Under the pieces are notes generated by a model. The model had not been told where the DNA came from. It was given only the letters and a program-made list of their open reading frames with translations, and did not search any database. From NCBI RefSeq assembly GCF_001194135.2, contig NC_068984.1:29015751-29079750 (forward strand): 64,000 nucleotides of DNA. The letters run 5' to 3'. Each line of letters opens with the position of its first letter. The first letter of the stretch is position 1. Made by a program: the position numbers and the translations under genes. This DNA is from Octopus bimaculoides (lineage: Eukaryota). This document shows positions 6,106-63,055 of this stretch, piece by piece.

Positions 6106-6311
6106 TAATAAAGACATCATAAACATACTCCAACATACCTCAATAAAAACATGATAATCGTGTCTCCTTCAACTGTGCCAAAACACAATCACTACAAATA
6201 GCAAGACGACATATTACCTTCTGTCATCTGTACTGAAACAAATCGCATATAAAGCTCTAACTTTATTAACATTAAGTGTCACAATCTTCAATGATTTCTC
6301 ATATTTTTCTT

Positions 6312-6650
6312 CCTTCTTTCATTTGTTTCCATCATTAGCCTGCAACTATTCTGGGGCACCGCCTCGAAGAATTAGTGGAATGAACTGACCCCAAGACTTT
6401 TTTAATTTTGAAACTGAAACACATCAATATCGGCTGTCAAGCAGTGGTGGGGGACTGACACAGACACATACACACATACATGTATACGATGGGCTTCGTT
6501 CAGTTTCCGCCTACCAAATCCACTCACAAGGCTTTGGTCGACCAGAGGCTATAGCAAAAGACACTTGCCCAAGATGCCACACACTGAGACTGAACCCAGA
6601 ATCATGTGGTTCAGAAGCAAACTTCTTACCACACAACCACTCCTGCACCT
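6312..6650 (-). mobile_element. tRNA-headed SINE family B, near full length
   Basis: Reverse complement starts ggtgcaggagtggttgtgtggtaag (A-box-like) and has ggttcagtc (B-box-like). Body is ttgggcaagtgtctt...gccttgtgagtggatttggtag, followed by a (GT)-rich middle and ggtgccccag...gaaacaaatgaaag tail. Confidence 0.85.
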
Positions 6651-12274: not shown

Positions 12275-13479
12275 TCCTAGATAATATGCATCTAAATATG
12301 ACTGTTATATTCAAAATGTTTAACAATACAGGTTTATCATAACAAATTACCTGAAGAGTGAATAAAATTGCTAATTGCCATGTCTTCCAAACATAGGTTA
12401 ACTATAACATTTATTTTTAAAATGTGCCAAAATCTCAGTGGAAATTAAGAAATTTAAAAAACAAAACAAAAACTAAGAAAACAAATTTCTCAAATATTAT
12501 ATTAAAAACCACTGGTGTAAGTAATATCAAGTTAAACATTTTTACAACTGAGAATAATTAATAATTTGATTAAAAATTAACTTCAGTCCCATCTTTCGGA
12601 AGTACTTTTCATATTTTCTAAAATAGGTTTAAAAATTAAATTATTTTTAATGGTAAAACTTGAAGTGGATAAAGTTATAAATAATCTCATATGTAGACTA
12701 TTGGATAGAAAAACGCTGAAAGCTTCCCAGGGAACTTGAACAATTAAAAGTTATTTACTTAGTACCTCTCAAACTTTCTAAATTCTTGTAATGTAGACAG
12801 TTTTGAAAATTATTTGAAAGTAAATCCAAATTATGCTAGAATATTTTAAAATTATTTCAGAAGAAATTTGAAAACACTCACAAGCAGTGCATTTCTCAAA
12901 ATGGAAAATAATAGGTATAACAGGGTTTAAAAAAAGCAACAGATCACTACATGTCTTCACATGATAACTTAAACAATTTCCAGGACAGTTTAGCTTTTGT
13001 GTCTCTACATCGTGATCGTAACATGTCAGGAAATACAGATTTTAACAAAAGAAAAAGAAAACCAGATGAAAATTACACTGCTGTATTGATTTTTACCTAT
13101 CTCGAATATTGCTCTTTGATTTCCATAGGGATTTCATTGAATAACAGAAATTTGTATTTAACCATATCACTAACAGCAGCAGTCAACCGTAGCTTTTGTT
13201 AAAGTGATGTTTTGTCTGTTCATGGTGGAATAAATATCAAGTGCCATTGTAGTTAGGTAGGGATTTGTACCATAGTAGATAACAGACTCACTTTCATATA
13301 ACCTGGCATTATTAGCTTGTACATTATATGGTAAAGATAACATGCTAAATGTACTTCATTTGATAGGGAGTTGAAGTTGGTGGGAAAGAGTTGTACCAAC
13401 ACAAACATTAACACCTGAACAGGAAGCTACACAAAGCAAAGAAAAAACATATAATTGATGAATAGTAGTATTTTTTAAA

Positions 13480-13830
13480 CCTGTTATCCACAAATCTCTG
13501 GGATGAGGGAGAGAGAGAGAGATTTTGAAAGGATGGAAGAAAAAGAAAGCAAGGAGGAAAAGAAGGAAACAGTAAATCCAGATAAAAAACATAAAATAGA
13601 AAGGAAGAGTGCAGGATATGCAGAAAAGATAGAGAGGAAATGAAAAAGGAAAGTAAAAGATGAAAATATAGAAATGTGCAGTGATAGGATGACAAGAGAG
13701 AGAAAGAATGAAAAGCTGATAGAGGGAAAATGAATGAGAGAAAGGCAAAGGAAAATGAATGACAGGAAGAGAAATGAAAGAGAAAGGGAATAAAAAGCAG
13801 AGAGAGAGAGAGTGGGAGAGACAATAAGAG
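13480..13830. repeat. Purine-rich (GA/GAA) low-complexity block
   Basis: Plus strand is almost all A/G; produces the F/L/S-rich minus-strand ORFs 13356..13912. Confidence 0.9.
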
Positions 13831-14230
13831 ATTGAAGGATCAATACATATGAGAAGTTCTGAAGTTTCTCCTTGACTTTCCAACCATATTGATGCTTACT
13901 AATTAGAAACATTTCTAAAGAATGATATGAATATATTGACTTGAACTAATGTAGTTAATTATCCATAATCTTTAGTTATCAACACCAAGCTTATATTTCA
14001 AGGAAACCATGTGTTGAAGAATTAGGCAGTTATCAATTTTCTGTCATGTATGTTGTAAAAGTATTGATTTTTTTTTTTTTATTCCTCTACAGTCAACAAA
14101 AGGATCTTTGCTGATGGAAATGTTCAATGAGCTGCAACAGTCATTATGGTTAAGGCAAATGAACTAGCACAAACAGCGAGATATAATAATTCTTCGAAAG
14201 CTACTAAATGAAATAAACTTTCAGAATTGT

Positions 14231-14458
14231 AGATTAATTCCAGTGACCACCATTCTATATTCTAGCTGAAATCCATAAAAACAGCAGTGTAAATTATGAA
14301 GTGCATCTTATAGGAAGCTGTGAATTTGTCACAAATGGCATAGTGAGAGAATAATTAATCTTAAATCAAGAATTCAAACTCAGATACATGAATCATGCAG
14401 TAATTAGGTAAGGCTCATTTACATTAGTTACTTATTCTATCAAGCTGAAATCTATGGC
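14231..14458 (+). repeat. Left arm of perfect 228-bp inverted repeat
   Basis: Base-by-base reverse complement of 14877..15104; no mismatch found. Confidence 0.97.
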
Positions 14459-14786
14459 ATCACTTCCCACATTACAGCTGAGTGATTTAATTGTTAGGCA
14501 GTCAAACTGAAAGTCATTTAATTCTCAAAGCCATGTAGATATATATTATACTCATTTATTGTGCTTTTAATTATTAATTTTTCTGTATGTGATAGTGGAT
14601 TTTCATCGATGAGTTCTTGAAAATTGGTTATTTTCCCTAAAACTATATATATATATGTTGTTGTACTTGGGGATGGTCATATTGCCAGTTTAGCCAATAA
14701 AAACACACGCACTGTATATTTGGTGTTAATTTTTTTTTTTTTTTTTCAGCTTTATATTACATTAATCTTAATCTTAATCTTATTTC

Positions 14787-14831
14787 GGCCAGAGTTCTTT
14801 CGTCACACTTCTGTGACCTCATCAGTGGTCC
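14787..14831 (-). ncRNA. Minimal type-I hammerhead ribozyme-like motif
   Basis: Minus strand reads GGACCA-CUGAUGA-G-GUCAC-agaagu-GUGAC-GAAA-G-AA-CUC-UGGCC. This gives the conserved CUGAUGA and GAAA cores, a perfect 5-bp stem II, a 2-bp stem III, a CUC cleavage triplet and a short imperfect stem I. Predicted cut is between 14792 and 14791. Confidence 0.6.
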
Positions 14832-14876
14832 TTTGTTTCCTTCTTTCTTATGTGTATCTCACCTTGCTAACTATCA

Positions 14877-15104
14877 GCCATAGATTTCAGCTTGATAGAA
14901 TAAGTAACTAATGTAAATGAGCCTTACCTAATTACTGCATGATTCATGTATCTGAGTTTGAATTCTTGATTTAAGATTAATTATTCTCTCACTATGCCAT
15001 TTGTGACAAATTCACAGCTTCCTATAAGATGCACTTCATAATTTACACTGCTGTTTTTATGGATTTCAGCTAGAATATAGAATGGTGGTCACTGGAATTA
15101 ATCT
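14877..15104 (-). repeat. Right arm of perfect 228-bp inverted repeat
   Basis: Exact reverse complement of 14231..14458; spacer is 418 bp. Confidence 0.97.
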
Positions 15105-15140
15105 GTTTCAACACACGATTTCACATAAAAAATCTTGCAA

Positions 15141-15179
<39 letters not shown>

Positions 15180-15191
15180 ATGATGATCTTT

Positions 15192-15322
15192 TAGTTTCCA
15201 TCAATGAAATCCACCTACAAGACACCAGTTAGACCAGGGTGCCACGCAGTGGAACTGAACCCAAAACCACGTGCCTGGGAAGCGAACTTTTCTATGACAC
15301 GATGTTGTGCCTAATGTTCATG
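15192..15322 (-). mobile_element. SINE family B, deleted copy
   Basis: gggtgccacgcagtggaactgaacccaaaaccacgtg...gggaagcgaac is the reverse complement of the family B head. Confidence 0.65.
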
Positions 15323-16869
15323 TTACTGAGAGAAATGAACAGTAGAATTAGAAGTGTATCAGACGAAATGCTTTGAGTATAGTTATGTCCCTTTTCATTT
15401 GCTTTGTACTTAATATTTTTTAAAATAAATGCTGTCTGTTCTATATTAGAAGTTGTTGGCTCAAGTGATTATATATGAGTTAATATAAAGAAAATAAATA
15501 GATAAAAATTTGGCCTATATAAGGTTCAATTTAGTTATTCTTTATGCCAAAATATTGAACTTTATAATGAAAGAAACTTCTTAGGCAAAATGTTTAACAT
15601 CTAAGTAAACTCAACCTTCAAAAGTAAGCTGCACTGAACATTATTCTTCTTAGAATAGAGATAATCTTATACTAGTTATAATGCATTAGAATACCTAGAG
15701 CTTTATTTTCACACAAACTATCTGATTCACAGGGTAAAAAAAAGATATTGTGTGTGTTTTGTGAGTGTATGTGTACACACGCACATACATATGTAAGCAC
15801 ATCTCTCACCATATATAGAAAGATGTCTCTGACCACTATAACACCAAGTGCTTTTATGAGGCCCTTTCTGAAGACTACTCCAATATCAAATAATGGCAAT
15901 TTAATAATCACAATTGGCTATTTAGCTGGACATACTGAAGACCATCATGAGGGAGTGCTGTCTTCACAAACCATTTATCTATCTTAGTGACCACTAGGGC
16001 ACAGAGTATGGAACCCTGCCAAAAACTTAGGTAGAGCAGCTTATTTCTAGCTTAGTGCTTTTCCTACATTTGCCTCACATGGAAAATGGCACTAGTACTA
16101 CTCTCCTGACATAAAGCCAAACACTGTCTCATCTTAGCTAATTTTGTTCCCAATCAATTTGGTTATAACTATTTCTGCAATTTTTATAAACTTGACCAGC
16201 AATTTGGTACCACTGTTATTTCCCCTCTCTAGCTCTCTTTTTAGCCCTTGTAGTAAAGTAACAGTGATGCAGCTATACCCATCATATTAGGATTGACATG
16301 TTCCTGATTGACAAAACATATGACTAGCCCATATCCTACTCTGCCAAACTTGCTAAGCATCTCTGTGGTAACTCAACAGGCTAGGTGATTCTCAACCTTT
16401 ATATCCTTAATTGTCCTGTCTGCCATACTACTGTTAACTTAAATGGCAGGTCCCTCTGTTCAATATACTTGGAAGAGATTCCAACTCCCCCCCCCCCATA
16501 AACTCTCTACATTCAAGAGCTTCTACTAGTACCACATCCTTGTCACTTTCTTTTCTGCACCAGTAAGAGAATGTGTACAATTGCCATTCTATACATATTC
16601 TCAACAACATCTTATTCTCTCAAACCCACTGCCTAGCAATCCAAAACACCTCATGCTTCTGATCTTGACATTACGAAACATCTACAAAACTATTTATACA
16701 TGTGTATGTGTGTATGCGTGTGTGTCAGCATATGTACATGTCTGTGTGGTCTGTGTATTTATGTATGTGCGTACATGTGTACTCACAAGCAAGTAACCAC
16801 TAACATTTTCCAAGTAGTTAATCACTTTTGTAGATATAAATTTTTACAACATTCACACTCACGCCATCT

Positions 16870-16870
16870 C

Positions 16871-16922
<52 letters not shown>

Positions 16923-17009
16923 NNNNNNNNNNNNNNNNNNNNNNNNNNNNNATAGATATATATATATATAGATATATATATATATATAGATATATATATA
17001 TATATAGAT

Positions 17010-17040
<31 letters not shown>

Positions 17041-17130
17041 TGTATATTTATATATATATATGTATGTATATATATGTGTATACCTATATGTGTGTGTATA
17101 TCTATATGTGTATATATATATATATTTACA
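16870..17130. repeat. Compound (TA)n/(TAGA)n/(TATG) microsatellite containing a 29-N gap (16923-16951)
   Basis: Read directly; source of the IY-repeat ORFs. Confidence 0.95.
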
Positions 17131-17686
17131 CACATACATATAGGCATATTTTATTCCATGTTCGCATATGCGATAGCTACAATTCATATGTCCAAAGATG
17201 CACATTCAGAATAAATACACTAAAGAAAAAACATCAACATTGAGGAAAAACACTCTCAATTCAAATCTTTTGTTAGTCTGGGGTAATTGACATTCTTTGT
17301 GATTAACTTACCAATCTGGTGACTGACATGAATATGGTATCAATTGACACTGGCATTTCCAAAGATTTGCACACTTACTTGCCAGTGCTGTTGCAGCTAA
17401 TCAAAGCAATAAACCTAATTCTAAAGCAAGTTTTTGGCATCACTACACTTGGTATTCATTTCTTGTCCAGTTAATGGCTTGATGGGACAGCACTGACAGA
17501 AAATTAGGAGGCATCTTACATTCAAAGCCATACCCCATGAGTCCACTCAACATGTCTTCAACTTTAATAAAGAAAGATGTGTCAGAGCTGATTAGAACAG
17601 CAGCAGTGAAAACAGTTCAATAGGAAAGATGAAGAACAGCAAAACATAAAACAGCAGCATCTTCTACAAAAAAGTCAACAGCAACC

Positions 17687-17688
<2 letters not shown>

Positions 17689-17762
<74 letters not shown>
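17689..17762. repeat. (TG)n microsatellite, 74 bp, followed by a GA-rich block to about 18260
   Basis: Read directly. Confidence 0.95.
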
Positions 17763-17763
<1 letters not shown>

Positions 17764-18346
17764 ATGCACATGAGAGGAGAAAGAGAGTGAGAGAGAGACG
17801 AGAAGAAAGAGAGAGGAGAAAAGGAGACAGAGGGGAAAAGGAGAAAAGGAGACAGAGGCGAAAAGGAGAAAAGTGAGAGACGAGAGGAGAAAGATAGGAG
17901 AGAAGGAGAGAGAGAGAGAGAGAGAGAGGAGAGAAAAGAGATATCAGATTACAAAATAAGTGTTTAGGAACAGTGGCAGAAAAGATAGTGTTCAAGTATA
18001 AGTGAAATGTAATGGAAAAAGTAAAAGAGGAATTTGGAAAATGCTTTAAAAAAATACAGAAAGGAGTAAAGAAAAAGAACATTCATTTGAAGAATGGAGA
18101 AGGTCAATCAAAAAAGCAAGGGGAAAAATGACTGGAGAAATTCTGGTATAGAAATTGTGATATAGTTTATTTTAAGCAGACAGTGAGAAGAGATTGAAGT
18201 AAAAGTAGAGAGTAAAAAAGAGCAATAAACTAACTGAAGGACAAATTACAAGTCTGTATAAATCTATCAGAATTAAAGAACGGTAGAGGGCCAATAAGAG
18301 AATTTATATGAGAAATTATATGGCAGAGGGATCATACAATTATGTA

Positions 18347-18382
<36 letters not shown>

Positions 18383-18420
18383 GTGAATAGATAAAATTGT
18401 TAGTTTGAAAAATTTTGAAA

Positions 18421-18708
18421 GGTAGCGAGATCGTTGCCAGTGCTGCCGAACTGGCTCCTGTGCAGGTGGCACGTAAAATACACCATTTTGAGCGTGGCCA
18501 TTGCCAGTTCCGCCTGACTGGCCTTCGTGCCGGTGGCACGTAAAATCACCTACTACACTCTCAGAGTGGTTGGTGTTAGGAAGGGCATCCAGCTGTAGAA
18601 ACTCTGCCAAATCAGATTGGAGCCTGGTGTAGCTATCTGGTTTCACCAGTCCTCAGTCAAATCGTCCAACCCATGCTAGCATGGAAAGTGGACGTTAAAC
18701 GACAATGA
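18421..18708 (+). mobile_element. Young 5'-truncated RTE-type 3' UTR copy
   Basis: CpG-rich, with two gccagt...ggtggcacgtaaaat subunits. Continues ttaggaagggcatccagctgtagaaactctgcc...ccaacccatgctagcatggaaagtggacgttaaacgac, highly similar to 20162-20310. Confidence 0.85.
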
Positions 18709-19285
18709 AACAGAAATAAAAATCATCATCATTGTCATCTCTATCATTTTGCATCTTTTTTACCAGGCTGCAACCGACAGATTGTTAGAGTCAAACTCAT
18801 CTTAATATGTAGAGCACCTGAGATAACCAATGTCTTACAACGTAGATGGTGTGCATTTTACCATAGCACCAGTACTATATCAGTTGTACCATATCAAAAA
18901 ATCTAAAGGGTCACAAAATACTAGCGTCTTAGACAAATAGCTTGCAATGCTTCTTGTCGAATCCATGCCTCACATTTACATTTTAGTATATTTTCTACAG
19001 ATGAATGTCCTTCCAACATACTTCTAGTCACATTCCAGACTGTACTAGATGCACATAATCATGCCACTAGAACTTAGGGGCTTGCCATATGATAAGACTA
19101 AAGAGTCCCTACCATCACATATTAGTTATTTGGATAGTTCCTTCTAGAAATTTAGTGTGTGCTATGACTAGCAGTGTTCGTGTTTTTCTCCATTCCTGGG
19201 AAGCACAAAGAGTGTAGCCAAGATAAAACTAGTGTAAGAATGGATAAATTTTTTATTTCTTCCTATGATTTATATTTCTCTTTAA

Positions 19286-19493
19286 TCCTTAGCTTTCTGT
19301 CAGATGTAATGCTTATTTATTCATTGTTTTGAAGTAATCGTGGATTATTTTCCAGCTTCAAGATTTCAATCATATGGTTGTATATTTTTAGAATGACATT
19401 GAAGGGTAGGTGTGAGAGGCCAGATCTGGCTTGTTTGAACATAAAACAAGTAGAATAATTTGGTCAGATGTGGCCTGTTTAAACGATGAAGGG
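19286..19493 (+). mobile_element. TTAA-flanked MITE (piggyBac-like ends)
   Basis: TTAA at 19282-85 and 19494-97, right end ...aaggg. The left end resembles the reverse complement of 43545-43582 (ttaaccctttagcattcagattattctgtcaaatgta). Confidence 0.5.
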
Positions 19494-19544
19494 TTAATCA
19501 ATTTTTCTGCACTATTATTTCAATATCAATGAAGACAATGAACT

Positions 19545-20850
19545 AGTGTAATTCTTAGAACATCTGAAAAAATGCTTTCCAGTATTTCTTCCAGCTCTTT
19601 ACATATCAATTTCAAATTCTAGTGAATTGAACTTTACCTTTCCCCATTTTAGGGGTCAATAAAATGAAATACCAATCAAAAACTGAGGATTAATATATCA
19701 AATAATTACCTCCCATCAAAATTACTGGCCCTGTGCCTATGCTGGAAATTTCAATATCATTGACATGATCACATGACATGGCTATGTCAACTCCTTGGTT
19801 GATACATCTATTTTCTCTATTAGCTATATATTTAAACTATATAGCAGTTGCTTAGAGCCTAATGACAGGCATTACCTTCCTGGAAAGAGAAATGCTAGAT
19901 TACCATATCTTCACTTTATTTCTAATATTATTACTGCTGCTGTACTTATTACTTTCTAATTTACAAATTATCATTATTATTACTCATCCATGCTTAACCT
20001 TTCGAGTTCAAATTCTACCGGACTCCACTCTGTTTTTCATCCTTTCAGGATAAAGTACCAGTTGAGCACTGGAGTCGATGTAACTGACTTAGTCCCTCTT
20101 CCTAAATTGCTGGCCTTATGTTAAAATTTGAAGTCATTATCATCATCATCATAATCATTAGGCATAGGAAGGGCATCCAGCTGTAGAAACTCTGCCAGAT
20201 CAGATTGGAGCCTAGTGCAGCCTTCTGGCTTGCCAGTCCTCAGTCAAATCGTCCTACCCCTGCTAGCATGGAAAGCAGACGTTAAACGACGATGATGATG
20301 ATGGTGATGATGATGGTGTTGATTATTATTATTTGGTTTAACTCAGGTTCACTCTAATTCCTGATAGGATTTATGTGGGTAGTGGGTTACAACCTGTAAC
20401 CTGTATCCACAAGTTTTCAGAGGTCTCCTAATAATCTTTATTATCATCATTATTGCTATTATCATTACTATTATTATGCTGAAGTGTAGAGCTTGCAGTG
20501 TTAGCATGCCAGACAAAAATAGTTAATGGCATGTCTCTATGTTCTGAGTTCAAATTCCACCAATATTAACTTTACCTTTTTGTCTTCTTAGGGTTCATAT
20601 AATCAGTACCAATTGAGTACCTGAGTCGATGTAATTGATTTACTTGTGCCAAATTTAGAAAGAAGAGGAGGAGCCGCTGCCACCACCGCCACCACCAGGG
20701 AGGTGAATTAACAGAATCACTAAGCATCAGAAAAGACGTTTTGCAGCATTTCTTCCAGCATTTTACATTCTGAGTTCAAATCCCACCAAAATCAACTTTA
20801 CCATTTGTTCTGCTGGCATCAATAAAAATAAAATACCAGTCAAATACAGA
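19545..20850 (+). mobile_element. Cluster of four degraded tRNA-headed SINE family C copies (about 19545-19750, 19995-20135, 20490-20655, 20700-20850)
   Basis: Each has ttctgagttcaaattcc (B-box-like) or a decayed version and/or ttcatcctttc...aagtaccagt...gtcgatgtaat, as in the cleaner copy at 58742. Confidence 0.7.
20162..20310 (+). mobile_element. Young, strongly 5'-truncated RTE-type tail with (GAT)n end
   Basis: Near-identical to 18575-18700; ends gacgttaaacgacgatgatgatgatg. Confidence 0.85.
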
Positions 20851-21216
20851 TCTGCTGCATTAGTTCGACTTCACCATGCTGACAAAGTGAAATAGACTGA
20901 GACATAAGTCCATACTTGTCTCTTACTTGCAAACAAAGATCAAACTGCTCCTTCGTTAACCATGTACATTACATTGAGAAATCTATTCTACATTTCTAGG
21001 AATTTCCCTTCTCTCAGAGTTGCTAAGATCAGCCATTGAGTTTTTTTCTTTTTCCACTATCAACTCATAAATTTTTCCATTATCAACTTATAAATTGAGG
21101 GAATTTATTTTACACAACATTCAATACGTTACTCTCTATTTCATATAAACACATAAGTGTTTCTACCAAGGTGAGGTACCAAACAGAAGCCCTTATTTTC
21201 TTCTGTTTTTGTTGTA

Positions 21217-21439
21217 CAGTAATCCCTCAACTACCACAGGTGCTACGTTCCAAAACCCCCTGCGATAGGTGAAAATCTGTAAAGTAGAACCAGTATTGTA
21301 CTGTGGGTTTTTTTAAAATCATTTTTATCATTTGTATATATCTATTTTATTATAAATGTGAAACAACACCATGGAGGAATCAACATATGCTTAAATGATA
21401 AACCATGATAAGTGAACAATGATATTCGAGGGATTACTG
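21217..21439. mobile_element. Tigger/pogo-type MITE (223 bp)
   Basis: Perfect 12-bp TIR cagtaatccctc / gagggattactg with TA duplication at 21215-16 and 21440-41. Confidence 0.9.
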
Positions 21440-22774
21440 TACACTTTTGTGTCATGAACCGTAGAAAGGACTTTTGCACAATAATGTTCAGGAATAAATA
21501 ATCTATTTTCATTAGATAAGATAATTTTTTACTATCATTTCAGAATGTAATCTTAAATTTAGTCTTTTCTCACAAAGCAATTCTTTAAGTGAATATAAAG
21601 GGTACATGTGTTAAAATGATTTTTTGATGTCATTACTGTCTGCGCAGCATCAAACAATTTTCATCTTTCCTATTTCAAAATATAATGCATTTGTAAAAAT
21701 ACATAATGTCAAACAGATTTGAGTCACACTAAAATAATCAAAATGATTAATGATTTTAGCAAGTAAGCAAAAGATTTTCAAATCATATACAGATAACATG
21801 TGGGCCCACCTGACAATCAACAGAAAAGCTTACCTAGAAATATCAAGAATCAAAAGATACACATCAATAACAATGAAGGCTGAGAGATATGAGAATGAGT
21901 GTTTCTTGAAAGAAAAAATTTTGTTTTTATGTCTTGAATTTTTCAATTAAGAACATGTATATGTGTATGTGTGTATATAGTTTCAAGTTTTTGTAATGTA
22001 GAATCACTGAAGATATGCCAAGAGGCTGAGAGCAGAGATTTTCTTTGTTCCTCTTGAAGAAATGATACCTTGTAATTATCAATTCCAGTACCTGGATTTA
22101 ATGGAAATGGAAACAATAAAACTCCATGTGTACAACATAATTTAGGATATAAATCTTTTTAGTGTAGTATTATGGGATGTAAATGTTGATATTGATTCAA
22201 GCTTTGATATAGATGTGAATGAATTATTTTGTGATACTATTTCATTTTATTTATGTTGTTATTTGGTTTCTGGTTGATTTTATTCTTTGCAAGTCACCTA
22301 GAAAAAGATGAAACAATGACAGAGAAAATTTTAAAAGGATTGAGAAACTAGTTTGGATATGTTAATTATAACTGAACCACTGCAAAGGAATGTGCATGCA
22401 GCTACTACAAAATAAATTAGGTTAAATTATTACCTGGCAATACACATATACAATAAATGTGAGCAAGACACATTCAACAACCATTATTAGGATATACTAT
22501 TGTGGAAATATCAATAAACAAGTTATTTCCAACAAGTAGTAGTTGGAAATGCAACAGCAAAATGGTTGAAATTAAGATCTAGGCATTCAGTTTCTTTGCT
22601 TTATTTTACTTTTTTGGAAACTTGAAAGCAGAAATTGCAGACACACTTTGCATGTGTATTGGCATCATTATTTATGCATCTGTGTGTGCACATATACACA
22701 TTGTATTCATAAATATATATACATGTAACTTATAAGCTTAAACATATACAAATACGTGCATGTATATATTTATC

Positions 22775-23140
22775 GTTTATGTTTTACTTGTTTTAGTCAT
22801 TGCACTGTGGCCATCCTGGATCATTGCCTTGAAGAATTTTGGTGAAACAAATCAAACTACAGTACCTATTTTTCTAAAGTCTGGTATTTATTTTATTGTT
22901 CTCTTTTGCCAAGACACTAAATTACATAGATGTAAGCACACCAGCACCAGTTATCAAATGGTGGCAGGGGACAAACATAGACACAAAGACTTCTTTCAGA
23001 TTCTGTCACCCAAATCCACTCATGAGGCATTGGCCAGCTTGAAGCTATAGTAGAAAACACTTGCACAAGGTGCCATACAGTGGGGCTGAAACCAGAACCA
23101 CGTGAATGGGAAGCAAGATTCTTACCAGACAGTGCCTATG
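22775..23140 (-). mobile_element. SINE family B, near full length
   Basis: ttttacttgttttagtcattg tail, caaatccactca...gctatagtagaaaacacttg...aaggtgccatacagtggggctgaa head region, all in reverse orientation. Confidence 0.8.
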
Positions 23141-24217
23141 TATATAGAAGGGAAATTATATGTGTGTACACACACAGAGTAGCCTCGTTTAATGAGAACA
23201 GAGACCTGTGTTAATTGTATACTAGAAACTTGAAGACATGTAACTGTATTTCAGCTAACATTTTACAGGTTTGATTAACCTCCTTTGAAGTTGTATCGTT
23301 TTGGCGTATGTTCATCAAACATTTCTTATGTGATTTTACAATAAGAACCCTGGCTTTGTGAAGTCACATATTCTAATGACCATGGTATTATCAAACTGAA
23401 GGAACTAACTAAATTATAGGAGATGTCACAATGACTGGCTTCACTCCAGCATACCTATAATTGCACAGACAGACAAGGGCCACCAGTAGTCACAAGATTT
23501 CAGAGGAGATGCATATTGGATTTTGAGGGAACAATTTGAGAGTGAAAAGTATGAGAACATCAACTCCGAATTGGTCTTAAGCCTTCTCATTTACATAGAT
23601 CAATATTTCTATGTCCTTGTATATTACTGCTAAGTAGTTGTTGACATTAAACTAAGTTCATTCGTCCTTTTGACATGCCTTATTTTTATCTGTTTAAGGC
23701 TTTAAAAACCCTCCCACCAGGCTAACCTCATGGAGGTCCCAGCTTAGATGTTAAAAACCTAACCATGTAACAAATTATATTGGACTGCTGTTGACTGTAT
23801 TAGACTACATGCACATCGGTGGGTGTGAGTGCTCATAAGTTATGCATACATTCATGTGTTTGCATAAAGATAGGCATTTCAACTGCATTAAATATATTTT
23901 TCATTACCTTAATTAGATTTCATACCTGATTTTAAATTGATAACAAATTGCCATTTCAAAGATAAATTTTAGGATGACTTCAATTTTGCCAAAAGCTCGG
24001 TTACCTAACACACTGCAATTTTAATTCTTTGTCACTGTGCAGATATACATTGGTTCAAAATTCTTTAGATCTTCAATATCAATTGCACTGAATTACTTGC
24101 TATCCTTGAAATACTAAAACACTTACCATCACGACTTTCATGCTTTTCTGGTGACTCTGATATGACTAGTAAAAGTATATCAAGTAGATATTTTTGAAGT
24201 CATATTGTAAACTACTA

Positions 24218-24296
24218 CACTGGCCAGCTCCTGTCAAACCATCCAACCCATGCCAGCATGGAAGGAGAACATTAAGCAATGATGATGATGATGATA
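24218..24296 (+). mobile_element. RTE-type tail fragment with (GAT)n
   Basis: gccagctcctgtcaaaccatccaacccatgccagcatgga, nearly identical to 44678-44720. Confidence 0.8.
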
Positions 24297-25097
24297 ACTG
24301 AACTAATGAAATTGCTATTCCATCAGAAATTAAATAGGTTATCATTATCACTTGAGCAAAGCACCAACAAAATTTGAATTAAATCAGACAAAATATGAAG
24401 AAGAAATAGAGACCAGCAACCCACATTCATTCAGTAACATTCAATAAATCATTTATTCTTTCCAAACAGATTGCATATCTGTAGAAGCCTTACTATGTGT
24501 GAGAAAGCGTTGGTGTAAATGTGGAAAATTGAGTTTGGATGAACAACTGTAAATGTAAGCATGCCTAAAAGTATAGTATATGTATGTTCATGTACTGTGT
24601 TTAAACACACACACACACACACACCTGTGTATGAATATGTATGCATACATGACCTATTTGTCTCTTCAGCTTCAATTAATAAAGTTTTCATGACTGACCA
24701 GACACCCAGCAACACTGAACACATTGTTTACAATATTTACCATGAACTGTGAAAAGCAACATAAAACATTATGGTTTATTTATCTGTTTTTGGTTGTTCT
24801 TAACTGTGAAGGTTTAAACAAAATAAGTATTAGAATCAGCTGCTTTGTAAAACCCTTAAAGTATTAAGGAATATCAATATGTGTTGGCAGCATAAGGGAT
24901 TTATAGTGTTAAGTGTATACAAGTTGCATTTAGAACATACAAATGTATGTATGTTTCCACAGAAGTAACTACATAAATGCATATGTATGCTTTTATAAAT
25001 GCACTTTCTTACAAAATTTTCAGTTAAAGATTTATGAGAGAAAATAATTCAATGTCTATTTCTTGTTCTGCTTATAGAGGTTAGAGCAAAAAAATAT

Positions 25098-25133
25098 TGA
25101 TGATGATGATGATGATGATGGTGATGGTGGTGG

Positions 25134-25164
<31 letters not shown>

Positions 25165-25177
25165 GATGATGATGATG
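25098..25177. repeat. (GAT)n/(GGT) trinucleotide repeat, 80 bp
   Basis: Read directly. Confidence 0.95.
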
Positions 25178-25739
25178 TGAATACAGAATTCAAATTATAC
25201 AACTCCAGCATTGCCCCCACCCCAAAAACATGTTTTAGAAAACAGTTTCATTCTGAAGAGATTTATATAATTTAATGAAAATGAATGGTGGAATGCTGAA
25301 TCAGCAAAATTGAGTTCAATTCACATGAGAATGCAAGCTGCAAGTGACAGATGAATTTTACTTTATTTTTGAAAATAAAATTTGAATAATACTCATAGTA
25401 ATCAATGTAAACTTGAATGCTAAGCAGAAATGAAATGAGCAAAGGTAACCAGGAATAACAGTTAAATTGTTAAGTGAAAAACATATTCATTAAGCAAGAA
25501 GCATGTCAGAAAATTGGACAAAGAACTGGTTAAATATACAGTGAGAGCAGGTAAGTAATATCTATGACTATCAGAATAGGTGTTTGTTAAAATGGATAAT
25601 AATATGTGGTGGTTCAGAAGAATCAGTTGTGTGCTCTATAGTTGTGTACCTTTATGCACTGGGCTCAAAAGTCAGCAATGTAGACATTGCATTTTGTTCT
25701 CTGAAGGTCAATAAAATCTGTATGTCTGTAAAAGGCAAG

Positions 25740-25770
<31 letters not shown>

Positions 25771-26079
25771 CGTGAATATAATTTATGCTCATCCACAAAT
25801 TAGCACGCATGTAGCTACAATTTTAGGAGGACATTCGTCACAACCCTAGCTGTATTTTCGCCAAATTATTTTTCCTGAGGCACCCGCGGATAGCGGTAAA
25901 AATCAATTTTCAAGTATAACTTTTACCAATTTTGAAGTTTCCTAACTTGAGTTAAGTCCCGTCTTGCCATAGTGAAGTGAAAATGTGTGTGTGTGTGAGA
26001 GAGAGAGAGACGTTGTGTGTTGATGTGTGTGTGTGTATGTGAGGGAGAGAGAGTTTGACTACGTCTAACAAAAAAAAAA

Positions 26080-26729
26080 NNNNNNNNNNNNNNNNNNNNN
26101 NNNNNNNNNNNNNNNNNNNNNNNNNNNNNNNNNNNNNNNNNNNNNNNNNNNNNNNNNNNNNNNNNNNNNNNNNNNNNNNNNNNNNNNNNNNNNNNNNNNN
26201 NNNNNNNNNNNNNNNNNNNNNNNNNNNNNNNNNNNNNNNNNNNNNNNNNNNNNNNNNNNNNNNNNNNNNNNNNNNNNNNNNNNNNNNNNNNNNNNNNNNN
26301 NNNNNNNNNNNNNNNNNNNNNNNNNNNNNNNNNNNNNNNNNNNNNNNNNNNNNNNNNNNNNNNNNNNNNNNNNNNNNNNNNNNNNNNNNNNNNNNNNNNN
26401 NNNNNNNNNNNNNNNNNNNNNNNNNNNNNNNNNNNNNNNNNNNNNNNNNNNNNNNNNNNNNNNNNNNNNNNNNNNNNNNNNNNNNNNNNNNNNNNNNNNN
26501 NNNNNNNNNNNNNNNNNNNNNNNNNNNNNNNNNNNNNNNNNNNNNNNNNNNNNNNNNNNNNNNNNNNNNNNNNNNNNNNNNNNNNNNNNNNNNNNNNNNN
26601 NNNNNNNNNNNNNNNNNNNNNNNNNNNNNNNNNNNNNNNNNNNNNNNNNNNNNNNNNNNNNNNNNNNNNNNNNNNNNNNNNNNNNNNNNNNNNNNNNNNN
26701 NNNNNNNNNNNNNNNNNNNNNNNNNNNNN
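26080..26729. other. Assembly gap (650 N)
   Basis: Run of N. Confidence 1.
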
Positions 26730-26789
26730 TTTTTCCATTCATTTCTGTTTATGAAATTCTCTGTACGTAATTTTGCTTTTTCGATGGTC

Positions 26790-28265
26790 AAGGCAAATGA
26801 TGATTGACAAAGCAACAGTGCCCTAATGCTGACATTGGATACAATGACCTGATCTGCAATAATGCGCTGATTGAAATCTAGGATGCTCTGCCCGAAATAG
26901 GTGGGGCAGCATTGAACGCATTTGGTTTGCCATCCTCATTAACACACTCCCACCAAAGTTACTTCTGGAGTTGTCGTAGGACGCTGATGGCCTTGCAGAG
27001 TACCTGAGAGTAAATGAACCGAAACTGCTCCCTGCTCAGAAGCTGGTGTACAAAACTGCTGTCAGTGCTGTTGAAAAACAGGTGGGTGGCATTTTTTTCC
27101 TCGATGCTCCTGGAGGTACCGGAAAATCCTTTGTAACACAATTAATACTTGCTAAGATTCGTCACAAGAAACAAATTGCACTAGCCATTGCTTCCTCGGG
27201 AATCACTGCTACATTATTGCCGGGAGGTAGAACGGCACACTCAGCATTCAAGCTGCCTTTAGATTTGGTGAAGGCTGAGGTTTCTATTTGCAACATTGGC
27301 AAAAATTCAGAGGAAGCTGAAGTTCTTAGACAGTGCCTTCTCATTGTATGGGACACAATGACCAATAAGGGTGCCCCTGAGGCACTGGACTGGTCACTGA
27401 AAGGTATCAGGGATTCTACAGCTTCTATGGGTGGTGCAACTCTATTGCTTCCAGGAGATCTTTGGCAAACCCTTCCTATCATCCCTAAGGGAAGCTGGGC
27501 TGATGAAGTGTATGCATGCCTTAAGTCATCCACGTTGTGGCCCAAGGTTAAGACCTTAAGCCTAAGCACAAACATGCCTCCACACTTGCTTGGTGATAGC
27601 ATGTCTGCAGCATTTGCTGAAGACATTTTAACCCTTGGAGAAGGCAAGGTTCCTAGGAATGATAGCGGTGACATATCCATCTCTGAACTGTGCAACACCG
27701 TGGACAACCCTTCCGATCTTTTAGAAACAGTATTCCCCAATCTGGAAAGTAATATGCAGACATCAATTGGTTCAGTGAAAGAACCAACCTGGCCCCCAAA
27801 ACTGTAGCTGTCAAAGCTATCAATGACCAGCTCATAAGCCGAATTCCAGGTGAGGAGCGCATCTACAAATCGATTGACCAGACCTCTGACCCCCAAGACA
27901 TTGTCAATTACCCTATCGAGTTTCTCAACTCATTGGAGCCAGCAGGGCTTCCACATCACGTTCTTAGGCTAAGGGTTGGATGCCCAATTATGCTAATCAG
28001 AAACTTGCTTCCACCTAAACAGTGCAACGGGACCCGCTTAGTAATCAAGTCCCTGATGCCCCACATTATTACAGGGTGTAGGAGGGGTGAAAATGTTTTC
28101 ATTTCAAGGATGCAGTTTTATCCCTCGGGGTCAGACATGCCGTTTAACTTTCACAGATCGCAGTTCCTAGTGAGACCATGCTTTGCCATGTCCATCAACA
28201 AATCCCAAGGTCAAACACTATTGGTGGCAGGCATCCATTTGGGGTTTTCCATTCAAACAGGATAA
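26790..28265 (+). pseudogene. Helitron RepHel Pif1-like (SF1B) helicase domain, disrupted
   Basis: Motifs FFLDAPGGTGKSF (Walker A), ASSGITATLLPGGRTAHSAFKLP, LIVWD, LLPGDLWQTLPII, ACLKSSTLW, LSTNM, LRVGCPIMLIRNL..CNGTRL and FAMSINKSQGQTL. Has an upstream in-frame stop near 26878, a frameshift near 27790 and no motif VI. Confidence 0.92.
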
Positions 28266-30954
28266 AAAAATTGATAAACCGATTCCTTATAGGATTTCCC
28301 ACTAAAATTGACTACACCCCATTTTCAACCATAACTTTTACCAATTTTGACATATTTTGCTCAAACCTGATGCCAGCATTACTTAGGATTCATGGGATCA
28401 TTGAATGCTTTAAGTTCTCAAAAAAAACAAAAAACAATCAAATTGCCTGCAACCCATTTTCAGCCAAACATTTACCAATTTCAACAGATTTCGCTCAAAT
28501 TTGATGTTAGTGTCACTTATTTTGGTTTGAAATATAGTGCTTGATCACTTAATAATCCTAACTTAATCCCAGGCAATGCCAGGCTATACTGCTAGTAAAT
28601 ACTAATTGAACAATGGAATTTAGTTTATTTGTGGCACCCATCCACCAAATCGGAAGTCTTATATCTATGTAATAAATCAATGTTTGATGTGAATGGATGG
28701 AGAAAGATTGAGAGATGAAAGGAAGAGCAGAATTGAAGACAGTAACCCAAGTAAAACATGTACCTAAAGAGATTATAAACAATATTCACTTAAAAATTAA
28801 ACAAATAAAATATGCCAAGATGGAGAATTATCTACTGTGAACAACACTACTGTACATTGTTTTCATGCCACCTTACTCTTCTGATTCCATAAATTTTACA
28901 AAATACACTAAATTTTCTAGTTAATCTTTCAAACAATTAATGACAAACAATTATTCACTAAAAGTCAGAATATCTTATCTCTACCAGCTTAGCACCTTTC
29001 CATCTAATCTTTCATTATCAACCTATCTTGGCAGAAAAACACGTACCAAAATAAAATACAAACTTACAAGTTGGCAAGAACATTTCCTCTCTCTCTCTCC
29101 CTCTTATATAAATTTACTTTCAATTCTGAAACTCTCTTAGAAAAATACTTTTCATAGTTTATTTGAGGATTTGCTTCATTTCCTTTATGTTTCATCAATG
29201 GCTTTTAATAGCAATTAACATGAATTCTGATTAACAATAATATTAAATTAGGGTAAATACTAGCCAAATGACACAAGATATAGTAACGTTGATCAGCCAC
29301 TCAAAATTCTAAAACATTCTATCCAATGCTTCATAAAAACATTAGATGTTCATCACAAATAATTATATTGGTTGATGTAAAAGACAACGTTATTTTACTT
29401 CATAATTAATATAATTCTATTTGCTTGTATATTTACATTTTTATATGTTGAACTTATGATTAGATACTAATAACTACTTAATTGTTACACTAAAAACAAT
29501 ACAGCACTGATAGATTGTCAGTGGGAATTGATTAGGTAATATAAATGAAATTAATAATGGTACCAGAATATCCACAGTAATATTCGATCTTGTTTCTATT
29601 CCTCTAGAGTAATATCAATTGAGAATTTCTCTTAATTAAAAGGTACCTCAAGAAGAGGAAATTAGAATCAATGTAAAGCAAGTCGGGAAATAGTATATTT
29701 TGAATTAATTATGTGATGTCTATATATATCATCACTTCCATTGTTTTCCTTTGTTGTTTCATGTATTTAGAGAAATCTCCTATATAAAGAAGAAAACAAA
29801 AAAACATTCTCATGCTAAGTGAAAGAATGGAAACAAGTGTTTTGGAAATGAAGTATCACAAATCATTTTATTATGAACCCTGCCTAGCTATGTCTCATTT
29901 CTTGTTATATAAACTGTTTTTGTATATTCCTTAATTTGCAACAACCTAAATCTGAATTTTTTAGTTTATATTGTATATGTGTTTGTGTGGGTGTGTCACA
30001 TTAACATTGTTTATGCCTTTTTCCATAATAGAGGCATGCATTAGACAGGACATTATTGCTCTCCTTCATGGATCAGATAACCACATCTGGCTCAAATATT
30101 TCATTTTGACTTGGTTTCTACAACTGGATGCCCTTCCTAAGATCATACACACATTCTTACATTACTGTTAAAGTTTATTATTTTGTTATTACAAACATCA
30201 CATTGTATATCAACAAAAATGCATTTTTTTAAATGCTGCATATGCATGTTCTTGTGTGCGTGTGTGTATTAGATACTGTATAATCCAATACTCTATTTGT
30301 TTCCATAATAACCATTCTCATTTTGGAGATTACAAACATCAGGAAATATTCATTTCTTGTGGATCATTGTATTATCTAGGTAATATTAAATTTTAAAAAA
30401 GCTAAAACAGAAGAGATGCCAGAAATATATCATACTGGTTTTTTGGGGCATTATATAGGAAGATCCTTTCAGCATAATGTTTTATTATACATGCTAACAT
30501 GCTTCTTGTATATTGTTGTTATGGGGACAGCTGTAACCACTCTGATACAGCCATATCCATGTAAAACAGATAACTCGATGAGAGTAAAAGTAAATACACA
30601 TTAATTCATAAACAACTGTAAATAGTTTAAGTTTTATGCTTGCAGTTAATTCAGATATACTAGATTTTGAACTTTCATTTCCATTCATAAGCAAAGTCAT
30701 TTTCAGATATCCAGGGAATTTTGTATGAATGGTCAACACAATAGTGTAATGGTTAACCATCTAATATATTTGTTTTATAAAGTAATAATATTCCTGGAGA
30801 AAATTTGAGCTTAAAAATGTTTCAATTCCTATCAGCAGTAATGTATTTATTGCATCCTTGGCCAAAATAATACTGTGACATATCTAGCTCTAAATAAGCA
30901 CTACAGATATTATAATTAACTAATATCAGCAACAACATGAGGAGCTGCATTGTG

Positions 30955-32797: not shown

Positions 32798-33180
32798 GGT
32801 ATGGCTGTGTGGTAAGAATCTTGCTTCCCAACCAAATGATTTCAGGCTCAGTTCCACTTCTTAAGAGCTTGGGCAAGTGTTTTCTACTATAGCCTGAGGC
32901 TGACCAAAACCTTGTGAGTGGATTTGGCAGAGAGAAACTGAATAGAAGTCTGCCATGTGTGTGTGTGTGTGTGTCCTTGTCTCCCACAACTGCTTGTCAA
33001 CTGGTGTTGGTGTGTTTATGTCCCTATAACCTAGTGGTTCTATGAAAGAGGCCGATAGAATAAGTACCAGACTTTAAAACATTAAGCACCTGGGTCAATT
33101 CATTCAATTAAAAATTGAAATTGGTGCCCTGGCATAGCACAATCTAATGGCTGAACCAAATAAAAATAAAAAGATCCTTC
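32798..33180 (+). mobile_element. SINE family B, near full length
   Basis: ggtatggctgtgtggtaagaatcttgcttcccaacc head, ttgggcaagtg...ccttgtgagtggatttggc body, (GT)n middle, gatagaataagtacc...ggtgccctggcat...aaataaaaataaaa tail. Confidence 0.85.
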
Positions 33181-48761: not shown

Positions 48762-49225
48762 GGTACAGTTATGATTATGTGGTTAGGAAGTTTGCTTCCC
48801 AGCAATTTTGGTTTCAGGTTTAGTCCCACAGCATGGCACCTTGGACAGTTCTCTTCTACTATCTCCCATGGGTAGCCAAAGCCTTATGAGTGAATTTGGT
48901 AAATGGAAACTGAAAGTGAGTTGTGTGTGTGCATCACTCTCTCTCTCTCTCCATCCCCCTCTCTCCCTCTCTTTCTCTCTCTCTTCATTCTCTTCATTTT
49001 GACACTGCATAATAGTTGCAAATGAGTGTCACTGCCACAAAAACATTATCATTCATTTCTAATCTTACATGAAACCATGTTTAATCATGAGAAAATATTA
49101 CCTGGCTCAAAAGTAAATGAGAGTTAGCGAAAGGATAGGCATCTGGCCATAGAAAATCTGCATCAACAAATTCCTTATGAACTTTGCAAGCATGGAAAAG
49201 TGAATGTCATGATGATGGTGATGAT
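48762..49225 (+). mobile_element. Composite SINE: family B head with RTE-type (GAT)n tail
   Basis: tgtggttaggaagtttgcttccc...tttagtcccacagcatggcaccttgg head; ends ggcatctggccatagaaaatctg...gcaagcatggaaaagtgaatgtcatgatgatgg. A further degraded family B head lies at about 48408-48560. Confidence 0.7.
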
Positions 49226-52104: not shown

Positions 52105-52440
52105 TGCAGGCATGGCTGTGTTGTAAGAAGTTTACTTCCTAACTACATAGTTTTAGATTCAGTACCACGAAGCCTGTCAAATGCCACTTTGGAAAGTAGA
52201 CATTAAATGAGTGTGTGTGTGTGTGTGTTTGTCCCTCTACCCCATTGTTACCACTATTTGACAACCAATGCTAGTTTATTTACATCCCAATAACTTAACA
52301 GTTAGGCAAAAGAGACAATAGTATAAATACTAGGCTTTAAAAAATAACTACTGGGATTTATTCACTCAACTAAAACCCTTCAAGACAATGCCTCAGCATT
52401 GCTACAGTCTAATGACTAAAGCAAGTAAGAGATAAAAGAA
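52105..52440 (+). mobile_element. SINE family B with internal deletion
   Basis: gcaggcatggctgtgttgtaagaag head, (GT)n, ggcaaaagagac...tactaggcttt...gcaagtaagagataaaaga tail. Confidence 0.8.
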
Positions 52441-53166: not shown

Positions 53167-53568
53167 TTCTTTTATTTTTGACTTGTTTCAATCACTGGGT
53201 TATGGCCATGCTGGGGCACTATTTTGGAGGGTTTAGCTGAACAAATCAACCCAGGACTCACATATGTTTTTAAAACCTAGTACTTATTATATCGGCCTCT
53301 TTTGCCAAACTGCTAAGTTATAAACAAACCAACACTACTAATCAAGTGGTGATGAGAGACAAAAACACAAAGATATATGCACACATATAGATACATGCAA
53401 ACACATAGATATATATATATATAAATACATGTGACAGGCTTGTCTACCAAATCCACTCACAAGGCTTTGGTCAGCCTGGGGCAACGGTAGAAGATCAAGA
53501 TGTCATGTAGTGGGACTGAACCCAGAACCATGTGTCTAAGAAGCAAAATTCTTACTACACAGCCACTG
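53167..53568 (-). mobile_element. SINE family B, near full length
   Basis: ttgtttcaatcactg...ggccatgctggggcac tail; ctaccaaatccactcacaaggctttggtc...gtgggactgaacccagaaccatgtg head, in reverse. Confidence 0.85.
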
Positions 53569-62848: not shown

Positions 62849-63055
62849 AGTGTAGGCTGCATAGTTAAGAAGTTCTCTTCACAGTTACATGGTTTGGGGT
62901 TCAGTTCAACTTTGTAGTACTTCAGGCAGATGTCTTCTACTATAGCTACTGGCTTTCTGGGTGAAATTGCTTGATAGAAACTGCAAAACATTCCTTTTAC
63001 ATATAAATGTGTGTGAGTGCATGCGTGCGTGTGTGTGTCCCCATGTCTTAATATC
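62849..63055 (+). mobile_element. SINE family B, degraded
   Basis: ggctgcatagttaagaagttc...ggggttcagttc...gtcttctactatagc. Confidence 0.65.

Follow-up and report, generated by a model that had tools for sequence, protein, structure and literature searches.

The 64,000-nucleotide stretch of Octopus bimaculoides DNA analyzed here, which we refer to as the window, contains a perfect inverted repeat with 228-nt arms within an intron of the annotated gene LOC106883834. This repeat is probably real: a stretch of ordinary intronic DNA that was duplicated locally and recently, in inverted orientation, without a function of its own. The evidence for this reading comes from the structure of the repeat, where it sits in the gene model, the absence of target-site duplications and of further copies in the sampled DNA, the energy of its predicted fold, and what is published about the assembly and about similar repeats in the same genome.

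A repeat search and direct comparison placed the two arms at 14231 to 14458 and 14877 to 15104 and found them to be 100% complementary over 228 nt each, 418 nt apart. These are the same coordinates that had been given for a perfect 228-bp inverted duplication with a 418-bp spacer by an earlier reading of the letters alone (here, the sequence-only reading). The parts of the repeat are as follows.

14231 to 14458, no strand assigned: left arm (X), 228 nt, AT-rich and non-coding; the exact reverse complement of 14877 to 15104.
14459 to 14876, no strand assigned: spacer or loop (S), 418 nt, non-palindromic, with (TA)6, a T17 run, and three copies of CTTAAT.
14877 to 15104, no strand assigned: right arm (X'), 228 nt, from the repeat search and direct comparison.

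Complementarity ended sharply at all four junctions, with 2 of 14 bases pairing outward and 2 of 14 inward, which is the level expected by chance. The second-longest exact repeat in the 64-kb window was 33 nt, and a search for further pairs with a length of ≥60 bp and an identity of ≥95% found none there. The claim of the sequence-only reading that the arm matches no repeat family elsewhere in the window held, as sensitive blastn (word size 9) found no second copy of it; the same search found no similarity to the spacer elsewhere in the window. The predicted RNA fold of positions 14201 to 15134 had an energy of -472.7 kcal/mol, compared with -186 +/- 8 kcal/mol for shuffled sequences (z = -35.5), and it contains the 228-bp stem, a long hairpin precursor of the kind that an hpRNA or endo-siRNA locus requires. 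The repeat and its fold cannot be products of chance.

Some short motifs in the repeat are recorded here as observations. The spacer begins and ends with ATCA (14459 to 14462 and 14873 to 14876), as a direct and not an inverted repeat; such a pair occurs by chance in 1 of 256 cases, before allowing for the several features inspected, and it is tied to no mechanism. Each arm also carries an internal direct repeat, TATTCTA(..)GCTGAAATC, with one copy near the outer end of the arm and the other near its inner end. In the left arm, the copies lie at 14257 to 14275 and 14433 to 14455, about 176 nt apart, and they are mirrored in the right arm at 15060 to 15078 and 14880 to 14902. The exact 10-mer of this internal repeat was reached in 88 of 2,000 shuffles, making it marginally non-random; it could be an old target-site duplication within the arm, or chance.

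The window has a G+C content of 32% and abundant transposons and microsatellites, and a composition scan found its coding signal to be transposon derived only. A 275-aa Helitron-type helicase open reading frame (ORF) at 26980 to 27804 was 100% identical to the protein of LOC106883834 of O. bimaculoides, and the locus encoding that protein (GCA_001194135.2, chromosome CM046604.1, 29,018,701 to 29,053,557) is identical to window positions 2951 to 37807, N runs included. O. bimaculoides is a coleoid, the group that the sequence-only reading had invoked. The exons listed below are the sole splice-consistent reconstruction whose translation exactly matches the annotated protein.

12951 to 27807, plus strand: coding extent of LOC106883834, four exons, from the NCBI gene model.
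12951 to 13082, plus strand: exon 1, from the splice reconstruction.
14093 to 14154, plus strand: exon 2, STKGSLLMEMFNELQQSLWL-S, with the GC donor AAG/GCAAAT; 76 nt separate it from the left arm.
14155 to 25494, plus strand: intron 2, 11,340 nt, GC-AG, the location of the inverted repeat.
25495 to 25550, plus strand: exon 3, from the splice reconstruction.
26999 to 27807, plus strand: exon 4, a truncated Helitron PIF1 helicase ORF.

By this annotation, both arms fall within intron 2 of LOC106883834 on the plus strand, with 76 nt between the 5' splice site and the left arm. The gene model is a predicted transcript that would span both arms. The sequence-only reading had made its RNA proposals conditional on transcription, and the position of the repeat inside an annotated plus-strand unit renders that condition plausible. 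We found no homologues of the N-terminal 82 aa (exons 1 to 3) by word-indexed search, and an exhaustive HMMER search of 1.84 billion representative proteins with the same segment returned the LOC106883834 protein itself only. Loci with Helitron paralogues from O. bimaculoides and O. sinensis (L002 to L008) share with the window only the interval from about 25750 to 28600 and not the repeat region. The 5' exons of LOC106883834 are probably not under protein-level selection, and the model has the appearance of a chimeric transcript derived from a transposon, not of a conserved gene. The host of the repeat is thus a young, transposon-derived, and probably non-conserved transcript model. Exact-product look-ups of three ORFs of the window found no independent contigs of the locus on record.

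Other features of the host region and its relatives were noted along the way. The 650-N gap (26080 to 26729) falls within Helitron-family DNA (about 25750 to 28600). The last 13 nt of exon 1 together with the first 8 nt of intron 1 (13070 to 13090) are complementary to the left arm (14275 to 14295) at 18 of 21 positions, and equally 18 of 21 positions are identical to the right arm (15040 to 15060), with an exact 12-nt core, TTACACTGCTGT; a match of this quality is close to chance for a 3.5-kb comparison, yet it is placed on the splice donor. A long compound microsatellite at 17689 to 17935 consists of (TG)37 and then an imperfect (GA)n array with a 25-bp period, and a purine-rich low-complexity block in host intron 1 (13356 to 13912) is similar to this array. 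In the O. bimaculoides paralogue locus L002 (CM046611.1, 11234 to 14255), a gene for a 432-aa thermolysin-like Peptidase_M4 protein is annotated 136 bp downstream of a Helitron helicase ORF, and HEXXH and NEAFSD motifs are present in an ORF at 13248 to 14255. Bacteria and fungi are the main sources of M4 peptidases. Helitron gene capture, horizontal transfer, and contamination are each worth checking as the source of this gene.

The O. bimaculoides assembly of Albertin et al. from 2015 was reportedly built with Meraculous from Illumina reads. The repeat might be an artefact of such an assembly, either with a spurious second arm introduced by gap closure or scaffolding or with an inflated identity, in which a difference of a few percent between the arms was pooled; we consider this unlikely, if far from negligible. 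The chromosome-scale assembly was obtained by adding Hi-C data to the earlier published shotgun assembly, such that version 2 reuses the 2015 shotgun contigs (PMC9068888), and it still comprises 713,915 contigs (PMC10700109). The N runs in the window (154, 29, and 650 bases) are gaps of estimated size, typical of short-read scaffolds. If Meraculous was the assembler, contigs were formed only from k-mers with unique high-quality extensions, and repeats were left as gaps and refilled from mate-placed reads, a step in which its authors noted rare errors (PMC3158087). Reads of that era were shorter than the 228-nt arms and the insert size was larger, and arm-specific reads would consequently be unassignable. 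Since the arms lie 646 bp apart and are inseparable by mates, both may carry one pooled consensus, and their 100% identity is therefore not reliable evidence of true arm identity or of youth.

Several observations argue against a spurious structure. The nearest N run is 1.8 kb away, so no gap adjoins the repeat, which lies at no contig end; it is also not a spacer-less palindrome, its long non-palindromic spacer being unlike fold-back chimeras. For Meraculous to close a gap, its two flanks must be linked by one unique k-mer path whose size is as expected (PMC3158087). Under these rules, all four junctions should carry repeated read support, as each needs well-supported k-mers and a size-consistent closing path (PMC3158087). 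We found no other perfect repeat of the same kind in 141 kb of the same assembly, indicating that this is not a frequent systematic artefact. Furthermore, 62 kb of the long-read O. sinensis assembly contained two non-microsatellite inverted repeats, one with 71-nt arms at 96% identity and a 671-nt spacer and the other with 199-nt arms at 98% identity that forms a head-to-head SINE dimer; structures of this scale are thus not peculiar to the short-read assembly. A heterozygous inversion combined with haplotype mixing was considered separately and rejected: by our own enumeration of junctions, inverting X, S, or X+S never gives both S/X' and X'/B, and no single inversion yields all four junctions.

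We infer that the structure is correctly assembled. A weaker version of the artefact, in which the structure is real and its identity is overstated, is quite possible, and it is compatible with a real duplication. Taken at face value, 0 differences at 228 positions place a bound of about 1.3% (95%) on the divergence of the arms. Alignments to the window of Helitron-family copies (82 to 87% identity) and of SINE copies (about 62 to 88%) from the sampled DNA are far more diverged than this. The sequence-only reading had described the perfect arms as recent, homogenized, or artefactual; the list of options was right, but the perfect identity is weaker evidence of youth than it seems.

About 203 kb of Octopus DNA was sampled in this work: the window and a further 78 kb from O. 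bimaculoides (together 141 kb), plus 62 kb from O. sinensis. The divergence of the O. vulgaris/sinensis clade is put at about 34 My (PMC10700109). The extra loci (n = 7, L002 to L008) were fetched through Helitron paralogues, and the sample represents less than 0.01% of the genome. Within these ~203 kb (<0.01% of the genome), there was no second copy of the arm or of the spacer. The absence of the arm from the rest of the 64-kb window is by itself almost uninformative on how many copies a 2.3-Gb genome holds, and a sample of 64 kb or 200 kb is compatible with a family of hundreds of copies. The repeat could accordingly be a low-copy, non-autonomous foldback or long terminal inverted repeat (long-TIR) MITE transposon of 874 bp, with 228-bp TIRs, that inserted into the intron. 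Long perfect TIRs around an AT-rich non-coding loop, in less than 1 kb, are the shape of such an element; the TATTCTA..GCTGAAATC repeat inside the arms could be a subterminal binding motif; and the window and its relatives are transposon rich.

We nonetheless judge a transposon to be improbable here. No target-site duplication (TSD) of at least 4 bp flanked the 874-bp unit or either arm at offsets of -4 to +4, and the flanking matches were limited to GT/GT and an offset TGT, which is the chance level over 81 offset combinations. The absence of a TSD and of MITE-type ends had been asserted from the letters, and our comparison bears this out in that neither the unit nor the arms have a flanking direct repeat of at least 4 bp. 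The internal motif, as described above, is only marginally non-random. To our knowledge, the termini of the repeat (AGATTAATTCC...) fit no transposon superfamily motif. A scan of the window with Rfam 15 gave no match at gathering score, and a relaxed threshold gave a single sub-threshold match, at 16 bits against a cut-off of 290 bits, that we read as chance. No tRNAs were found in the window, and a 24-mer of the arm had 0 matches in metagenome and viral contigs.

An old SINE copy lies close to the right arm.

15122 to 15300, minus strand: old tRNA-like SINE copy with a (GAT)4(AT)15 tail, identified by nhmmer; it lies 18 nt beyond the outer end of the right arm and does not belong to the repeat.

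A profile of this SINE family (403 positions) matched in nhmmer from model position 220 to 389 at 15122 to 15291 (E = 1.5e-25), and no match to the profile reached into the right arm. The right arm as the 3' half of the neighboring SINE was ruled out, as the family profile covers 15122 to 15291 only. The (AT)15(GAT)4 tract at 15146 to 15186 is the SINE's own microsatellite tail and not a duplicated target site. The sequence-only reading had expected an empty allele lacking 14657 to 15146; the tract on the right is part of the SINE, and we therefore rejected this (TA)n-bounded empty allele as unsupported. If the left and right flanks were contiguous in a relative, all 874 bp would be an insertion; at the O. 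sinensis locus L007, the signal for this was not significant, with 20 of 294 random controls scoring equally.

At that same locus (CM016877.1), positions 1272 to 1225 match window positions 15100 to 15147 over 48 nt at 85% identity (E ~3e-8). The homology ends no more than 5 nt from the outer junction of the right arm, and the locus is otherwise unrelated; the match may mark the border of an uncharacterized repeat. Besides the copy next to the right arm (15122 to 15300, minus strand), the SINE family has window sites at 6308 to 6640, 22773 to 23135, 32802 to 33174, 48772 to 48948, 52113 to 52439, 53168 to 53566, and 62855 to 63051. This abundant tRNA-like family includes a composite form of ~400 bp and a short form of ~180 bp, with (CA)n or (TA)n between or after the units, and is common to the window and the O. 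sinensis loci L004 and L008.

For the local duplication that we favor, a copy of one 228-bp segment would have been placed about 650 bp from the original, in reverse orientation. The route would have been a replication template switch or templated break repair and not transposition, an origin that we consider likely and that was chosen by exclusion. No microhomology is visible at the borders, because any would be hidden inside the arms. The arms may be too young to have diverged, or they may have been kept alike by arm-to-arm gene conversion.

A perfect long double-stranded RNA (dsRNA) stem is a preferred substrate of ADAR. If intron 2 of LOC106883834 is transcribed, pre-mRNA crossing it would fold into a perfect 228-bp hairpin with a 418-nt loop, which would be a typical substrate for ADAR hyper-editing and would be deaminated promiscuously before the intron is degraded. 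Published measurements make this setting concrete. Porath et al. (2017, Genome Biol 18:185; PMC5625713) measured near-identical neighbors in reverse orientation across 19 species, as the fraction of random 50-mers that match another sequence within 2 kb in reverse orientation, over at least 40 bp and at >95% identity. The density in O. bimaculoides was 4.4e-3 (0.44%), with octopus and frog exceptionally high; octopus also had the strongest hyper-editing of the 19 species, and predicted dsRNA regions were enriched for editing (PMC5625713). On the same criterion, 508 bp of the window is counted (0.79%), of which 456 bp is the inverted repeat (228 bp, 100%, 418 nt apart) and 52 bp is an (AT)n tract. 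From the published genome average, roughly one repeat of this size is expected in every 64 kb, and the repeat is an ordinary example of near-perfect local inverted repeats, a class already known in this genome. In favor of the proposal that the stem would be an ADAR substrate, it fits the published criterion in the species with the strongest hyper-editing (PMC5625713). Promiscuous A-to-I editing is the expected fate of intron 2, if transcribed, and fits the published data for the species.

In the O. sinensis locus L008 (CM016870.1), positions 17794 to 18191 form a spacer-less palindrome that is followed by an (AT)n tract, a potential source of long dsRNA.

The companion proposal, that the stem would be an ideal Dicer substrate, is weak: no evidence for an endo-siRNA pathway emerged from a small-RNA survey of molluscs that included O. 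bimaculoides and the same assembly (PMC12479628). This bears on a functional alternative, in which the repeat is a hairpin RNA gene selected for endo-siRNAs of the Drosophila hpRNA type or for splicing of the GC-donor exon. In favor of such a gene are the perfect 228-bp stem and the weak GC 5' splice site 76 nt away. We find it extremely unlikely. The repeat has no Rfam match, and no coding sequence in the sampled DNA is similar to the arms, so that no hairpin target is evident there. The 5' exons of the host are orphans that probably lack protein-level selection, which we also count against a functional hairpin, and perfect identity is what a neutral young duplication would show.

A more far-reaching joint reading can also be framed. 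It would hold that the repeat is a de novo, non-transposon duplication formed within the last ~1% of divergence; that an active process in octopus creates perfect intronic hairpins and supplies the dsRNA pool behind the extreme ADAR activity of coleoids; and that this hairpin alters splicing at the weak GC donor 76 nt away. The conjunction of these claims is very unlikely in our view. The repeat matters little alone, being one more near-perfect local inverted repeat in a transposon-derived, non-conserved intron. It is possibly a clean test locus for the action of octopus ADAR on a perfect 228-bp intramolecular stem of non-repetitive sequence, from which reads would be uniquely mappable outside the arms. 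The locus could likewise serve to test whether all of the "dsRNA-forming" loci that were counted in the O. bimaculoides short-read assembly are real, and it carries the caution that 100% identity of close repeats in a gap-closed short-read assembly is unreliable evidence of age.

Set beside known systems, the repeat resembles Drosophila hpRNA loci and those of LIRBase in its arm-loop-arm layout, which is able to yield a long hairpin RNA. It differs from LIRBase loci in that its 228-nt arms are below the >400 nt that LIRBase requires (PMC8728187), and hpRNA function depends on an siRNA pathway of the Dicer-2/Ago2 type, for which the mollusc survey found no evidence (PMC12479628). With foldback elements and long-TIR MITEs, it shares long TIRs around a short non-coding loop and a total of <1 kb; unlike them, it has no TSD, no recognizable terminal motif, and no other copies in the sampled DNA. 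The SINE dimer in O. sinensis L008 is likewise a near-perfect inverted repeat with arms of ~200 nt in non-coding Octopus DNA. That dimer, however, consists of two GC-rich tRNA-like SINE copies at 98% identity with no spacer, whereas the O. bimaculoides repeat is unique AT-rich sequence with a 418-nt spacer. Finally, in most species, the pairs in the class of Porath et al. are two copies of a dispersed repeat (SINEs and, in frog, palindromic Harbinger elements), in contrast to the octopus arms, which fit no repeat family in the sampled DNA, are 100% identical, and are putatively edited. The repeat otherwise has much in common with this class: the species and the underlying assembly are the same, it is non-coding and inside an annotated transcription unit, and the published density of 0.44% is close to the 0.79% of the window.
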